From contig JAIVFI010000024.1 of the NCBI GenBank assembly GCA_025558095.1, forward strand, positions 1 through 64,000: 64,000 nt of DNA, written 5' to 3'. The translations under genes and the position numbers were made by a program. The notes below the pieces were generated by a model. The model was not told the DNA's origin, did no database searches, and saw only the letters and a list, made by a program, of their open reading frames with translations. Position 1 is the first letter of the stretch, and each line of letters starts with the position of its first letter. Below, in pieces: positions 57,126 through 64,000 of this stretch. The stretch comes from Hyaloraphidium curvatum SAG 235-1 (Eukaryota > Fungi > Monoblepharomycota).

Positions 57126-57393
57126 GTGCGTGGCGGCGCTGGTGGGGCCGCTGCCGACGAAACTGTAAGCCACCTTCGGCGTGGGCAGATGCGAGGCACA
57201 TCGACTTTAGGGGGTTAAGGCATGGACTGGCGACGAATCACATTAACGAGGAGCCAGCTGGTTCCGTAGATCTCTGGACCCTACGGGTGCCGGCGCCGAA
57301 GGGCAGGATAGGCCAAAAAGTTAGCTTTACGAGTGAACACAAAAGCACGTTCTAGCAACGCGCACTTCTAGCTAAGCAACCGCTGTGATCTCA

Positions 57394-60278
57394 TCAAGTG
57401 CAGAGGCAGGCGCTCCCGGAGAAACTGCACGGCGAAGCCTGGGCATTGTCGCATGCGCAGATTGCCGAGTTGGGTGGAAGACACACGGCTGACAACTCGG
57501 AATGAGGATCAGGGAGCGTGCGGTGTCCGCAGTCACCCACTTGCAAAAGCAGCCGCGCCGGATGCAGTGAAGTTGGCAGGCAAAACGTAGTCGGGTCCAT
57601 TGCCGGCCGGGGCAGCTGGCGCCAGGGATGCGATTAAGGACGCCGCGGTCGATCGCACAAGACAGCCCACCGCCGAGCCCGCTTGCGCCCCTGAATGCGG
57701 CGCCGATGCTGCCGGGCGCCATCAAGACGTTGGTAAAGTTGTGGAGCGCCTGGGTGTTGTCGATGTTCCCCCGGACAAGGTTCCAGGGCGAGAGCTTGCC
57801 TATCTCGATGCGGAGCCGGTCGCCGAAGCCCCTGAAAAGGGTCGATCCGCCCGCGACAACAATCTTCATGGTCATAGCTCCCGCCCTATAGACCTGGGGG
57901 GTAGCCGCCACGGCCGCCGCGGCGATGTTCGCCAACCCGGGTCCGCCTATGCCGATGATCCGGGGCCTGAAGATCGCCTCGGGGACCGTCCACCTTAGAT
58001 CGCCTGGCACGGTGACGTTGGTTCCGTTGGCGAGCCTGAATCGGGCGGACGGCGTCCTGCCCCTGGATGCCGCGGCGTCGGGGACGGAAGCAAAGAACAC
58101 GTTGCGGGCCTGCTTGAGTTCGGCGGCCTGGGCGGCGGTGATGCGGAGCTGGCGGGCGATGTAGGAGTCCAGGTCGGAGGCGACGAGCGTGGTGGTCCTG
58201 ATCGCTGCCAAGTAAGTGAAGATGTTGCCATTCTGCTTGAAGACGGGGACCGCGCTCGCGGTCTGTCCAAAATCCAGGGAGAGGGCCTGGGTCCCGTCCG
58301 AGACTGCACATCCGAGCCGATGATGAGCCAATAGCAGGTGACGGAAGACGAACAAAGACGCACCCGACCCCGTGATGAACGGCTCCACGAGCGCAGGCTG
58401 GCCGATCCACAGCGCCGCGGGTGAGAACTCGGTCATGACCCTGGTCGAAAAGGCCATGCGCACCGCCATGGTGTTGAGCGGCGAGACCAGGAAGATCAGT
58501 TTGTTCGCGACCTGGGCCGTGTTGCGGACGCCGAGGAGGCCGAGAGCGTACTTGATCACGAGGACTAGGCCAGGCCTCCACGATGCGAGGAATCAGCGGC
58601 GCCGCGAGATCGCGCATCCCTTCTCCACCCACGTGTCCGACAGAATGCCGTTGACGATCGGATTTTTGGTGGGCCTGCCGGAGTCGACCGCCGGCCGGCC
58701 CACCAGGATCGTCCCGTTGGCGAGCGTCACGTAGACGTTGGGGAAGCTGAGCTGCGGCATACCGTCTCCGGCGTAGCCAGCTCGCACGGTGGTCGATCCG
58801 AGATCCAGCACGAGCACCTTGGACGCGTCGAGGGCCTGCTTGACGAGGGCAACCTCGGGCTTGAATGGGGTCGTGACGCTCGGCTGGCCGCTGCGGATCT
58901 TCTGGGTCTTGGAGTCCGGCTTGCTCGACAGGCAAGCCTTGGCCTGGACGGGCGGCGTTGGCAGGATGAACGGATGAACGCCGCACTGTTCCGCTCACCA
59001 GTGTAGGTCTGGTCACCGCAGCGACACCGTGCTCGCCAACGGCAACGCACTGGCAGCATATGTCCGAAATGCTCTTCTCGCACGGCGTCGAGCACTCCAC
59101 GGCGTTGAAGATGCCCGTGATGGTGGTCGCACTCACCGAATCTGCACGCGACCCCGCGGGTCAGTCGCTGCTGGATCCGCAAGACTGCCTCGCGATGTCA
59201 CCTTTGGTCCAGCCCGTCGGCGACGGCCCCTTCCACCTATAGATGACGTTGCCATAAGCGTCGCTGTCGAGGCCGAGAGCAATGCAGTCGGTTGTTGTTG
59301 GGCAGTTGATGTTAAGAAGATCCGAGACCCCGAAAAAGACGGACGGCGGCACCACGCCGAAGGTCCTGCGGGATTTGCTGTAGTAATAGATGCGAGCGAC
59401 TGTGCTGTCGTCCGCGGCGCTCTCGGTTCGGAAAATGAACGTGGTGTCTCCCACAACCTGCACGACCTTGAAAGGATCCAACGTAGCGTTCGGAAAGGGA
59501 ACCGGCGTCCATTTGGTGCCGTTGAATGCCATAACGGTGGAGAGGTCCCCTACGGCCATGCAATCGGTCCGGGAGGAGCAGGTGACGTCGATCATGGCAG
59601 GGACGGAAGCTTGAGAGAGAATCCATGTTCCATTCCTTCTCACGAAGATCAGGCCTGAGAATGACAGCCATGTCAGAGTAGCTAGGGTGCGTGTAGCGGC
59701 GCCGCACCTCCAGTTTGGCGAGTCTCGTCGGCAAGCGCGGCGTCGGCGCCGACCGCCACGCAGAAGCTGGCGTCCACACATTCGATGTACGAAAAAGTGA
59801 ACGTCTTTGGCACCGCAAGCGCCCGCTTGATAGACCATCCCGTGGCTTGCCACGTCGAAACGGGCTGACCCGCCCCAGCGGCAATGCACTGACCCCCGGC
59901 CGGGCAGCTCTGCCACGAGATCAGTGCCCCGTCCGCGGAACAAGGCGTGACTCTCACGATGCTCGATACATTGTAGTCCGTGTCGAGCTGCAGTGAGAAG
60001 GTGCCGTTGCGCGTCGCGCCAGCTGCCCTGCTCGCGCCCGAGAACCCGTAGACATTCCCCAGGAGGCCCGCGGCGAGGAACAGTTTGGTCGACGGGTTGA
60101 AGGAAACGTCCACCTGCGGCACGTGAGATCCGCGCGGAACGGGGTATGCGGAAGACCCCACCAGGTTGTCGACACTCGGCACGCCGGCGACGGCGATGTT
60201 CGTCCACTTCACCGCGTCCGCGACCGCGGCGAGAGCGGCGAGCAAAACGTACCCGAGAGGGGCGAAGCGCGTCGCCAT
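57394..60278 (-). CDS. Signal peptide + Cys-rich beta-propeller-like repeats + divergent actin-fold domain + Cys-rich tail
   Basis: Exons 60278-60162, 60113-59708, 59654-59202, 59141-59017 and 58943- join in phase via GT-AG introns; actin motifs VLVLDLGSTTVRAGYAG..P, PLN, LDFG..AVPV, VPEAIFRP, VVAGGSTLFRGFGDRL..EI; terminal exon VCLPPNSAICACDNAQASPCSFSGSACLCT*. Confidence 0.78.
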
Positions 60279-60857
60279 CTTTCCGACTTCAACGCGGCGA
60301 CCTGCGGGTTCCGGCGACGACCTCGACGTCCCCCCCGTCCAGAGCGTCCTGATCGAAAGTGCCCAGACCTCATAGCATCGCCGGCAATCGGCACCGAAGT
60401 GGCTCCGCACCGGTTCCCGAGACCGGGGCCTGGCTCAAGGCGCACGCAGATTTGAGGATAAGAAGTAGGCACGGCACCTTTCTTTCTGCTCATCCGAGCT
60501 TGTAATGCGTTGAGGATGTGTGTGCGGGTGGCCGAAGCGTGCGGACGCGGTAACACCCACCAGCCATTGAAGGGCCGAGAACATTTGCATCGCCGCGCGT
60601 TGCACTCCCTTGTCACTCCCTGGCAACAGCAGTGCCAACACGCCCTCGGAACTGGAACAGATTCCGCTTTCGGGCTCAAGGGATTCTCAGGGGTTGATCT
60701 CAAGCAATCTTGGATCCGTCCCTGAACCCAAGGGCCGACAAGGTCCCTAGCGTGCACCACCAGCCCGAGGCCGGAGCAACAGCATCGCCTTTTCCGCTCG
60801 ACCCCAGTTCGCTATCGCTCGTTCTACCTCACTCCGTCGACGCTGCAACATCGGTTT

Positions 60858-62622
60858 ATGGCGGGGCCAAGCGTCTGGAGTGTCGTCGTTCGAGTGTTGG
60901 CGGCCGCCGTCGCGGCCCTTGCGGTTCTGGGGAACGCGGCGGCGCAGGACACGGGGGACGAATTGCCTCTTGTCATTGATCTTGGCAGCAGCACCACCAA
61001 AGCTGGGTTCGCCGGAGACGATGCGCCGCGCGCTGTGTTCCCCACGCTGGTGGGGTGGCCGCGGGTTCGGGTGAGTGCTGCGTGCACGACCGCACGCCAT
61101 CTAGTAATGCGAGTCCGTCGTGCCCATATCCGAAGGGCGTCATGGTCGATATGGGCACAAAGAATGCTTATGTTGGAGACGAGGCCGTGGCGAGACGTGG
61201 CATCTTGGCCCTCAAGTACCCGATCCAGTACGGCATCGTCACTAGTTGGGAGGACATGAACAAAATCTTTGTGCGTGCGCGTTGAGCCGGCTCACCGACT
61301 GGGAGTTCTGACGTGTTTTCTGACGTGTTCCAGCACCATGTCTTTTACAACGCGCTGCGGGAGGCACCAGAAGAGCACCCAGTGCTGATAAGTGAGTGAT
61401 GCGTGACCGCAGGCGCCTGCCTGAGCTCAAGCAGATATTGCCCCGACCGTGACAGCTGAGCCCCCTCTCAACCCCAGCGCAAACCGGGAACGAATCACGC
61501 AGATGATGTTCGAAACCTTCGGAGTGCCCGGTAAGTCGTTCGGGGCCAAGCATATTTCGAGGATTAATCTCACGCCCCGGTATCGGCGTCGTAGCCTTCT
61601 ACCTCGTGAAGGAGCCTGTCCTCTCTCTGTACGCGTCTGGAAGGACGACCGGTACGCCAGGAAGGTCCCATTCGTGTCATCCTTGCTGATTTTGCATGCG
61701 CCATTCTAGGTCTCGTCCTCGTGTCAGGCGACCAAGTGACGCATGCGGTTCCAGTGCACAAGGGCTCCGTTGTGTCTCCTGCCATCATGCAGCTCAAGCT
61801 CGCTGGTTCGGACATTACCGCCTACCTGGTCCAGATGCTCACGGACCGCGGGTACGAGTTCACGTCAGGCTCGAAAGGATACGTGAAGGACATCAAGGAA
61901 ACACTGGGCTACGTCGCATTCGGTGCGTTGGACCGCCGTTGATCTCTCGGTCCGATCTCTGATGGTCTTTCAACAAGACGTTGCACGCGAGATGGCGGCC
62001 TCGGGCATCGACAGGGAATACGAACTCCCGGACGGCACGGTGATCACAGTCGGCAACGAGCGATTCCGGGCGCCGGAGGTAAGCTCAGCGGCGGGCACTA
62101 GCCCGTACGGCCCAGGATTGCCTTTATGATCCGCGCCGAACGAATGTCCTGGCCATACCAGATACTGTTCAACCCCGCCCTCGCAGGCAAAGAAGGCATG
62201 GGAATTTCGCAGCTAATCTACACCAGCATCCAGAAGTGCGACGAAAGCATCCGCAAGGACCTCTACGAGAACGTTGTCCTGGCTGGCGGCTCTACGAGTG
62301 GGATCAACCTGCAGCGCACTCGCTTTGAGAGCTGACACGCTCATTGCCAGTGTTTCCCGGCTTGGTCGAGCGTTTGCAGAAGGAGATCAGGGCACTGGTG
62401 ACCCCGAACACTAGGGTCACGATCATCGCCCCCCCCGATCGCGCTTACAACACTTGGATAGGTGATGGTCACGACCGTACTCACCCACAATTCGGCTCTC
62501 TGATCTGTTCTGTTGTAGGTGGTTCCAGCCTCGCGACGCTCTATACGTTTCGCGATATGATGATAACGAAGCCGGAGTACGAAGCATCGGGGCCGAAGGT
62601 CGTGCACACGAAGTGCTTCTAG
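60858..62622 (+). CDS. Actin paralog with N-terminal signal-peptide-like extension (10 exons)
   Basis: Exons 60858-61070, 61136-61270, 61334-61391, 61456-61530, 61595-61651, 61710-61922, 61978-62078, 62162-62297, 62351-62461, 62519-62622; [57 protein letters not shown], ends HTKCF*. Confidence 0.92.
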
Positions 62623-62990
62623 GAACCTTAAGATCATAATTGGCGACTTGGTGAAGCAGAGGTGAAGCGGAGTAGTCAATTTCGGTGGGAAAGTGTCAAG
62701 ATGAAGCAAACTGGCGGTTTTTCCGTCTGCTGCCGCGCTGCTGCAGACCCCGGAACAAAGCGCCCGCGCCCGGCGCGGCGAACCGCGCAAAATGCAGCCC
62801 GCCTCGGCCCGCCTGCTGCCACTTGGCGCCCTAGTGCGTCTGCGGCTGGGTGTGTTCGCCGTGTGGGCGCCGAACGCGCGGGGCGTCGAGCTCCGGAAGG
62901 CGTGCGTCAACCAGGGACGAGCAGCGACTGCACGCAAACTCCGTCGCGCAGCTCAGCCGCAAGCACGCGTGGCGCCTCTCGGCCTGCGCG

Positions 62991-64000
62991 ATGACGGCGG
63001 ATGCCGGCGGGCCGTACTCGTGCGAGCGCGGGGCGGTGCTGCGGTTGGATGCGTCGCGGTCGAGGGGGGACATCGGGGCGTACGAGTGGGGCTTCGAGGC
63101 GGCGCCGCCCGAGCGGCCGCCGGGGCCGTACGATCCCGAGATGGACCCGCCGCGGGCGGACGCGAAGAAGACGGCGTCGAGCGCGGGGGGTGCGTCGGTC
63201 GTCGTCTGCATGGATGTGATGGTGCGGGTCACCGTGACCTCCAAGTCTGGGGACGCCAAGCGGTCGTCGGAGCCGGTGCGGATCGCGTGCATCCCCCGCA
63301 CCGTCAAGCCCGCGGACGTCTCCAAAACGGACGAGATCAAAAAGGCCAACCTCCCCCTGTTCCCTGGGCAGTTCGATTTGGGCCGCAACGTCTGCGCCCT
63401 GGACGACGGCCCCGTCGGGAAGGACGAGGCGCAGCACTACTACCACCGCCCGCCCGGCTTGCAATCGTGGCTCGATGTCGGGTACCGCGTGCAGCAGGTC
63501 GACGATTCCGTAGGGGGGCCGGGGCCCTTCCACGGGTTCTGGCTCGTCTGGCTGCCGCATACGCTCCCGATCTGCCGGCAGCGCGCCGTCAACAGGAAGC
63601 TGTACCCCAAGGACCCCGAGGGCGTGTACCAGCACAACGAGCAGAGGAAGCAGCCGCGGCCGCCGCCCAAGAAGGGCTCGGACGCGCCGCATCCGTACGT
63701 GTGCGGCATGGGCAGGTTCGCGGCGAGCGTCGCGGCGCACGAGGGCAAGCACACGGAGCTGATCCTGGAATCCGCACGCCGGGAATTCGCCCGCGTCGAG
63801 CAGCGCCGAGGACCGGTGGACCCCGCGGGGCGGATCGAGGGGCTCTGCTTCGCGGACCGCGCGAAGCTGGTGACGGGGGCCGACGTCGAGATCCTTTACT
63901 CGGACGAGGAGGTTGGCAAGGCCACCTCGGGGAAGGAGGCCGAGGAGCGGATCCACGAGATGCTGGTCGCCGACGGGTTCGACGACTACGCAATCGTCTA
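62991..64000 (+). CDS. PKD-like domain + HExxH-containing hypothetical protein; runs off the window end
   Basis: Open frame absent from the ORF track (no stop in the window): MTADAGGPY..VLRLDASRS..YEW.F; later GPFHGFW, VAAHEGKH, DPAGRIE. Confidence 0.65.
   Translation, partial: MTADAGGPYSCERGAVLRLDASRSRGDIGAYEWGFEAAPPERPPGPYDPEMDPPRADAKKTASSAGGASVVVCMDVMVRVTVTSKSGDAKRSSEPVRIACIPRTVKPADVSKTDEIKKANLPLFPGQFDLGRNVCALDDGPVGKDEAQHYYHRPPGLQSWLDVGYRVQQVDDSVGGPGPFHGFWLVWLPHTLPICRQRAVNRKLYPKDPEGVYQHNEQRKQPRPPPKKGSDAPHPYVCGMGRFAASVAAHEGKHTELILESARREFARVEQRRGPVDPAGRIEGLCFADRAKLVTGADVEILYSDEEVGKATSGKEAEERIHEMLVADGFDDYAIV

Follow-up and report, generated by a model that had tools for sequence, protein, structure and literature searches.

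To our knowledge, actin is regarded as strictly cytosolic or nuclear, depends on the cytosolic chaperonin CCT, and folds only on cytosolic CCT/prefoldin. The known obligate pairs of actin-fold proteins, Arp2/3, actin-Arp4, and Arp7-Arp9, are likewise cytosolic or nuclear, and they are leaderless. In the wider actin-like ATPase superfamily, Hsp70 BiP/Kar2, Lhs1, and the GDA1/CD39 NTPDases are lumenal or extracellular. These proteins illustrate that this ATPase fold is compatible with a signal peptide and with a function in the lumen or in the extracellular space; however, they come from families of the superfamily other than actin proper and do not need CCT. Literature searches yielded no description of an actin bearing a signal peptide.

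Here, we describe a locus of the freshwater fungus Hyaloraphidium curvatum in which two genes, transcribed head to head, each encode an actin fold and an N-terminal leader. The locus lies in a 64,000-nucleotide stretch of DNA (contig C24), which was analyzed as a whole and is called the window below. The plus-strand gene (leader-actin) encodes an actin preceded by a leader, and the minus-strand gene (fusion) encodes a multi-domain protein (Table 1). As in actin-Arp or Arp-Arp heterodimers, two different actin-fold proteins are probably produced together, one near actin and the other strongly diverged; unlike in those heterodimers, both partners carry leaders. This gene pair is a real, unusual, and undescribed module, and the novelty claimed in an earlier, sequence-only reading of the stretch agrees with the literature searches, which brought up no described equivalent. 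Both start codons, at 60278 (minus strand) and 60858 (plus strand), are where that reading put them, with the spacer of 579 bp that it gave, and the two leaders that it quoted are present.

Table 1. Features of the leader-actin/fusion locus, in positions of the window.
Feature	Position	Strand	Remarks
Fusion gene	57394-60278	-	10 coding exons, 798 aa
Fusion stop codon	57394-57396	-	
C-terminal tail, residues 743-798	57397-57615	-	Six Cys at end
Divergent actin-fold domain, residues about 395-742	57671-58832	-	Pfam Actin, AF2, Foldseek
Cys-repeat N-terminal domain and linker, residues 23-375	58890-60212	-	
Fusion leader, 22 codons	60213-60278	-	Predicted cleavage after Ala-Asp-Ala
Fusion CDS introns	57489-57540, 57616-57670, 58304-58363, 58576-58632, 58944-58998, 59142-59201, 59655-59707, 59910-59957, 60114-60161	-	RNA joints
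Shared 5' region	60279-60857		One RNA contig covers all, with splice joints of both strands
Upstream ATGs of fusion gene	60378 and 60373	-	In spliced 5'UTR
5'UTR intron of fusion gene	60499-60560	-	RNA joint 60498/60561
Leader-actin gene	60858-62622	+	10 exons, product 400 aa
Leader of leader-actin, 29 codons	60858-60944	+	Predicted cleavage after Ala-Ala-Ala, before Gln-Asp
Leader-actin exons 1-5	60858-61070, 61136-61270, 61334-61391, 61456-61530, 61595-61651	+	
Leader-actin exons 6-10	61710-61922, 61978-62078, 62162-62297, 62351-62461, 62519-62622	+	
Leader-actin stop codon	62620-62622	+	

Both genes are expressed. In RNA contigs of run X1, canonical joints were found for 10 minus-strand introns and for the 5 listed plus-strand introns, all of them assembled in the spliced form. 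In the same contigs, the leader regions of both genes are unspliced, and none of the listed joints leads into a leader. A single RNA contig spans the two genes. Hence, the spacer, which the sequence-only reading had treated as a shared intergenic region, is not silent DNA. Its transcription gives rise to 5'UTRs that touch or overlap each other and include a minus-strand intron, as seen in contigs, a type of data that does not reveal where transcripts start, from which strand they come, or whether there are rare isoforms.

The frame of the fusion gene is open from end to end, and all nine of its CDS introns are backed by RNA joints. Its public model (P0151, 830 aa) has two introns of 48 nt left in. 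The product is made up of the leader, an all-beta Cys-repeat domain of about 350 aa, a divergent actin fold, and a six-Cys tail. The description of the locus as two actin-family genes stands insofar as Pfam Actin matches are found in both. The minus gene, however, is a multi-domain fusion rather than an actin behind a leader, and about 370 aa of Cys-rich, non-actin sequence separate its leader from its actin fold. Moreover, the actin folds of the plus and minus genes are only 28% identical, so that "paralogs", the term used in that reading, does not hold in the sense of close paralogs.

The N-terminal domain of the fusion protein contains 14 Cys, arranged as four C-x5-C pairs plus six further residues, and five N-x-S/T sequons. 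It had no match in a Pfam search, and sequence searches with it returned no relatives. In an AF2 model it is all-beta, with a pLDDT of only 39. A match to bacterial beta-propeller clusters in the Atlas (score 0.86) is to be taken as a lead only. The actin-fold domain, which has no Cys and four sequons, matches Pfam Actin with E-values of 4e-9 and 1e-12 (35.9 and 47.5 bits; the curated cut-off of PF00022 is 27 bits). Its AF2 model (pLDDT 85.8, pTM 0.84) finds eukaryotic actins as the best Foldseek matches, at TM scores of 0.85-0.88 by target and 21% identity. Structural modeling thus confirmed the predicted four-subdomain actin fold in a domain very divergent in sequence. At the nucleotide site, D11, G13, S14, Q137, D154, and G156 are kept and D157, G158, and H161 are lost. 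The tail is disordered in the AF2 model and has no KDEL/HDEL motif, hydrophobic GPI-type end, or transmembrane segment. In the whole protein, none of the 20 Cys falls within the actin fold (14 belong to the N-terminal domain and 6 to the tail), and 10 sequons are observed, vs. 5.4 expected. This Cys placement and the excess of sequons suggest a composition of the secretory type.

In the leader-actin gene, five introns were taken from RNA joints, and the other four were placed at GT..AG sites by which the reading frame remains open. Pfam Actin matches occur on every exon; seven stretches score 24-64 bits, four of which exceed the curated cut-off alone. The actin fold predicted for the product is safe because the protein shares 62% identity with the conventional actin of the species. 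As in conventional actin and fungal actin paralogs (PF00022), the mature part is a full-length actin of 371 residues, with the D-loop, the adenosine loop, and the C-terminal K-C-F. In contrast to conventional actin, the gene has an obligatory hydrophobic leader of 29 aa, stands head to head with a secreted-type gene, and shows changes at the nucleotide site (N12L, G15S, Q137E, D154V, and G158Q), where D11, G13, S14, D157, H161, and the G-G-S-T loop are kept. Like its paralog on C8 (see below), it keeps only two Cys, vs. five in conventional actin, the latter counted by eye. Given Q137E, D154V, and G158Q, the window leader-actin may be functionally degenerate.

Each leader carries the only ATG able to yield a complete fold, which makes both leaders obligatory. 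In the leader-actin gene, this ATG is the sole one of exon 1; upstream, its frame is closed by a stop at 60723, and plus-strand ATGs are absent between 60517 and 60857. In the fusion gene, it is the first in frame after the stop at 60435-60437, in a strong context (A at -3, G at +4). Both leaders combine a positive n-region, a hydrophobic core of 13-16 aa, and small residues at -3/-1, and by these rules both have the features of cleavable ER signal peptides. The leader-actin has a single Arg (R12), a 13-aa A/L/V core, and A-A-A before Q, with a maximal KD(8) of 2.90; the fusion protein has R4, an uncharged run of 16 aa, and A-D-A before V, with a maximal KD(8) of 2.85. The six frames of the window contain 271 ATG-ORFs that are 60 aa or longer; among them, a rule-based signal-peptide test was passed by the leader-actin and fusion genes only (2/271) at a strict threshold, picked after the data were seen, and by five at a lenient one. 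The presence of both leaders exceeds chance expectation. Leaders from two secreted carboxypeptidases of the same genome resemble them; these two controls are those of 13 marker genes that have their N-terminus in the matched exon, and both are secreted and none mitochondrial. With one or two basic residues and KD(8) values of 2.85-2.90, the window leaders do not have the features of a mitochondrial presequence, which would be Arg-rich, free of acidic residues, and an amphipathic helix lacking a long hydrophobic run.

The same head-to-head module occurs on a second contig of the genome, C8, where a 409-aa actin with a 33-aa leader faces a 798-aa fusion protein (annotated as P0001) of the same structure as the one in the window. 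The two modules have in common both genes, their orientation, their intron positions, and a leader on each gene. They differ in that the actin of C8 more closely resembles canonical actin (78% identity), its leader is Arg-rich, and the distance between the two ATGs is shorter (143 nt). The fusion genes are 86% identical, whereas the leader-actins are only 61% identical. Using spliced models joined from window coordinates, as for all alignments, counts, and trees, we obtained dS 0.43 and omega 0.18 for the whole fusion gene, with omega values of 0.48 in the leader, 0.17 in the actin fold, and 0.055 in the tail; the fusion pair is under purifying selection. For the leader-actin pair, dS is 1.43 and omega 0.24. 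Conservation of this arrangement in another old module, made up of paralogs, speaks for co-regulation of the two genes, as proposed in the sequence-only reading.

A tree of the actin family of the genome gave no resolved placement for the leader-actins, and intron positions were therefore used to place them. All nine positions are common to both leader-actins, and four are also found in an endogenous leaderless actin paralog on contig C12. Two derived changes, I/L in place of N12 and Ala in place of Ser in the L-S-G-G adenosine loop, are found in the leader-actins and in the fusion actin fold and are absent from the other seven actin/Arp sequences compared. In an exhaustive HMMER search of 1.8 billion representatives, the relatives of the fusion protein were its C8 paralog and two fragments that lie on a single 2.3-kb metagenome contig; a word-based search matched the two H. 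curvatum proteins only, and scans of metagenomes and prokaryote genomes found no fusion relatives. Neighborhood look-ups for P0001 and P0151 returned no entries. One metagenome fragment aside, nothing related turned up beyond H. curvatum, and these searches gave no ortholog from another species by which to gauge conservation of the leaders. The leader-actin product was searched exon by exon; among proteins of 90-285 aa, the high-coverage matches inspected were ordinary actins with a read-through 5'UTR.

From these data, we infer a scheme in which an old two-gene module, now in two copies, delivers both actin-fold proteins to the ER so that they act as a pair outside the cytosol, a scheme to which we give an even chance. 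The leader-actin would derive from an endogenous actin paralog in which a cleavable ER-type signal peptide took the place of the initiator region, and once this peptide is cleaved off, the protein would start like an actin, with Gln plus acidic residues. The fusion protein would be of the secreted type, with its signal peptide, disulfide-type all-beta repeats, strongly diverged actin fold, and six-Cys tail. Because they are transcribed divergently from a shared region, the two products are likely made together. Both would most likely enter the ER and then move on, since neither has a retention signal, a membrane span, or a GPI signal; for the fusion protein such entry into the secretory pathway is likely, and for the leader-actin it is plausible. 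Outside the cytosol, the repeat domain of the fusion protein could serve in attachment or targeting. A hetero-complex and a role as scaffold, decoy, or effector, as put forward in the sequence-only reading, are hypothetical. It is possible, and we propose it tentatively, that a true actin thereby resides in the secretory pathway, folds without CCT, and pairs or co-assembles with an actin-fold partner that is propeller-anchored and disulfide-stabilized, be it in the lumen, the periplasmic space, or the cell wall of this walled fungus.

The two upstream ATGs in the spliced 5'UTR of the fusion gene count against this scheme. A further difficulty concerns the actin. Because actin folding depends on cytosolic CCT/prefoldin, an actin that is 62-78% identical to the conventional one may be unable to fold in the ER lumen. 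The actin leader might then not be a working ER signal: the actin would stay cytosolic, perhaps held at a membrane by its hydrophobic helix, or be mitochondrial, and the fusion protein alone would be secreted. Consistent with this idea, sequons and additional disulfide cysteines are both missing from the leader-actins, and the start codon of the window leader-actin is in a weak context, with T at -3. The C8 actin leader, with six Arg, no acidic residue, and a weak core (KD(8) 2.11), is ambiguous; being Arg-rich and weakly hydrophobic, it could conceivably pass as a mitochondrial presequence. On the other hand, the window leader, with its one Arg, strongly hydrophobic core, and A-x-A before Gln, resembles a signal peptide and not a presequence, and this core has too few residues to span a membrane. 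According to the positive-inside rule, the acidic flank beyond the core favors translocation of the C-terminal side. In addition, the actin is paired with a gene of secretory type, and two modules whose actin copies stand at a dS of 1.4 have both retained this pairing. On balance, a leader without ER function appears rather unlikely.

It is improbable that the window leader-actin is a decaying duplicate of the C8 copy without a function of its own. The substitutions at Q137, D154, and G158 would fit such decay, as would the lower identity to conventional actin (62 vs. 78% for the C8 copy) and the longer branch (0.49 vs. 0.15). However, its 400-codon frame is open across nine introns, the gene is expressed and correctly spliced, omega against the C8 copy is low, and both the leader and the head-to-head arrangement have been retained.

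Alternatively, the leader could be an in-frame retained intron or belong to a minor isoform, the main product being an ordinary leaderless cytosolic actin. The conventional actin genes of this genome do have an intron near the start codon, a CAG right at the predicted cleavage site might act as an acceptor, and rare variants are dropped by contigs. Yet, the contigs that carry the spliced joints of both genes have the leader region unspliced, and the best hypothetical in-frame introns over the leader score 4.5 (C24) and 0.6 (C8), whereas none of 28 real introns scores below 10.6 on the same scale (median 14.5); this explanation is very improbable. Finally, an assembly or annotation artefact, which the slightly wrong public fusion model (830 vs. 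798 aa) might suggest, or foreign DNA is hardly credible for a stretch present in two independent runs with few or no differences, whose GC content and intron style agree with the genome and whose intron positions are in part those of an endogenous actin paralog.

Entry of both proteins into the ER thus remains the reading that we prefer. An expressed, conserved, and duplicated actin whose sole start codon belongs to a leader challenges the views that we hold on both the location of actin and its dependence on CCT, and the pairing with a secreted-type actin-fold fusion does so likewise. Should translocation be refuted, a hydrophobic N-terminal extension long kept on an actin would still need another explanation. 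Judging from the two leaders, H. curvatum may route actin-fold proteins into the secretory pathway, for which no actin is described. If this is true, it raises the questions of how actin folds without CCT, what role a pair of actin-fold proteins plays outside the cytosol, and how the product of a central cytoskeletal gene acquired a new address.

The 31.9-Mb genome of Hyaloraphidium curvatum SAG 235-1, a monoblepharid fungus, has a GC content of about 65% and numerous short introns. In the window, which lies on contig C24, two divergent genes start exactly where the sequence-only reading had placed their ATG codons, 579 bp apart, and both leaders that it quoted are correct. Gene structures were derived from contigs of run X1. 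The record of this run is labelled only "RNA?", and its contigs are considered RNA-derived because they contain canonical splice joints. Among the joints listed in the stretch, ten are of minus-strand and five of plus-strand type. With four more frame-keeping GT..AG introns, the plus-strand gene (leader-actin) comprises 10 exons, and its product is 400 aa long. The minus-strand gene (fusion gene) is a single open frame encoding 798 aa, and all nine of its CDS introns come from RNA joints. The public model of the fusion protein, P0151 (830 aa), keeps two in-frame 48-nt introns unspliced; both are removed in the RNA contig and in the annotation of a paralog, giving 798 aa. Alternative retention is conceivable, and the first of these introns, if kept, would add a Cys-containing segment.

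A single 2,488-nt RNA contig spans the spacer and reaches into both genes, with joints of both strand types, including that of a minus-strand 5′-UTR intron. Therefore, the spacer, previously called intergenic, is transcribed, and the 5′ ends of the two transcripts abut or overlap, even if transcript ends and strand cannot be read from such contigs. The spliced 5′-UTR of the minus gene carries two upstream ATGs, which may exert translational control. A third RNA contig, of 1,672 nt, covers the region directly downstream of the plus gene, where a PKD-like/HExxH ORF had been noticed.

Coordinates of the two-gene module and of related features (C1, C8, C32, other contigs of the genome; L001, fetched region of C8)
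Feature	Location	Strand	Remark
Leader-actin gene	60858-62622	+	stop 62620-62622
Fusion gene	60278-57394	-	stop 57394-57396
Spacer	60279-60857
48-nt introns, fusion gene	59910-59957; 60114-60161	-	in frame
5′-UTR intron, fusion gene	60499-60560	-
Upstream ATG 60378	60378-60370	-	2-codon mini-ORF
Upstream ATG 60373	60373-60209	-	out-of-frame ORF, extends beyond main start
Stretch covered by third RNA contig	62516-63100
Inter-module similarity	57393-60244; L001:5192-8059		84%
C8 leader-actin intron 2	L001:4512-4564		apparent GC donor
SRF-type MADS-box gene	L001:8320-9861	-	adjoins C8 module
Conventional actin (L002)	C1:417000-420500
Conventional actin (L005)	C32:232500-236000

The plus gene was searched exon by exon, joined spliced models being used in local scripts only, and 7/7 stretches submitted matched Pfam Actin. 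Its mature part (371 aa) shares 62% identity with the conventional actin of the genome, which is encoded twice, on C1 and on C32; over the aligned stretch these two loci specify identical protein, and they differ in their intron sets. Exon 1 contains only one ATG and the next Met lies beyond the first phosphate loop, so that a complete actin must begin with the 29-aa leader. No further plus-strand ATG occurs in the 340 nt upstream. Predicted cleavage after A-A-A would leave a Gln followed by an acidic stretch, similar to a normal actin N-terminus. Changes at the nucleotide site are N12L, G15S, Q137E, D154V, and G158Q.

The minus gene had also been taken for an actin preceded by a leader. In fact, its product has four parts: a 22-aa leader, an N-terminal domain of ~350 aa (four C-x5-C pairs, six other Cys, and five N-x-S/T sequons), an actin fold of ~350 aa without Cys, and a tail with six Cys at its end. 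Overall, it contains 20 Cys, none of them in the actin fold, and its sequons number 10 vs. 5.4 expected; it lacks a retention signal, a membrane span, and a GPI-type end. The actin fold is 24-29% identical to every other actin-family member of the genome. Its model is confident (pLDDT 85.8), and eukaryotic actin structures match it at a TM of 0.85-0.88 by target. For the N-terminal domain, the searches run gave neither a Pfam match nor a sequence relative; its model, although all-beta, is not reliable (pLDDT 39), and the Atlas resource offers only a lead to bacterial beta-propellers.

By a rule-based test, both window leaders are predicted signal peptides: their n-region is positive, their core consists of 13-16 uncharged residues, and small residues occupy -3/-1. 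Their hydrophobicity scores, KD(8), are 2.90 and 2.85, and their cores are too short for a membrane span. Similar leaders are found in two secreted-type carboxypeptidases encoded by this genome. Of 271 ATG-ORFs in the six frames of the window, only those of the leader-actin and fusion genes pass the strict rule, whose threshold was chosen after the data had been seen, and five pass the lenient rule. Literature searches turned up no report of a signal-peptide-bearing actin.

Folding is the most serious objection to a lumenal actin, since actin is known to fold only with the help of cytosolic CCT and prefoldin. No sequon occurs in the leader-actins, and they keep two Cys, vs. five in conventional actin (by-eye count), a difference that is only weakly suggestive. 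The leader of the second leader-actin, on C8, is Arg-rich and weaker than the window leaders, and could also be taken for a mitochondrial presequence. Retained introns account poorly for the leaders: every joint listed for the two genes was assembled spliced and the leaders unspliced, and in-frame hypothetical introns score far under the 28 real introns.

The head-to-head pair recurs on contig C8, with ATGs 143 nt apart. The C8 fusion gene (P0001, 798 aa) is 86% identical to that of the window. The C8 leader-actin (409 aa, including a 33-aa leader) is 61% identical to the mature window protein and 78% to conventional actin; intron 2, placed by homology only, shows an apparent GC donor (GCACGT). 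In the other ten actin-family loci fetched, no comparable leader is seen in those whose N-terminus is readable. The neighbors of the two modules differ, and therefore the wider neighborhood is not conserved; on C8, a MADS-box gene adjoins the pair.

The two leader-actins have 9/9 intron positions in common. Four of these also occur in a leaderless paralog on C12 (L007, with 69% identity to the leader-actin on C8) and one in conventional actin. Such sharing places the origin of the leader-actins within this lineage, from one leader-bearing ancestor. The leader-actin pair shows a dS of 1.43 (omega 0.24), vs. 0.43 (omega 0.18) for the fusion genes, whose introns are 73% identical. Thus, the head-to-head arrangement has long been maintained, in two modules, the fusion genes being younger or homogenized relative to the leader-actins. 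Along the fusion gene, omega drops from 0.48 in the leader to 0.17 in the actin fold and 0.055 in the tail. DNA similarity between modules extends from the fusion stop codon to the leader and then stops. Together with the dS values, this restriction to the fusion gene points to gene conversion, or else to later copying of that gene alone. Two derived residues, absent from the other seven actin/Arp sequences compared, are common to the leader-actins and the fusion actin fold, and hint that both partners share an origin.

Outside H. curvatum, the only relatives of the fusion actin fold found were two adjacent fragments (P0002 and P0004, 51-53% identity) on one 2,314-nt contig of JGI metagenome 3300059473, probably a single gene split by an intron and called as two. 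No leader-actin was found in other organisms, in searches limited by query length. The two-gene module is real, expressed, conserved, and duplicated. The fusion protein is likely targeted to the secretory pathway, and such targeting is plausible for the leader-actin.
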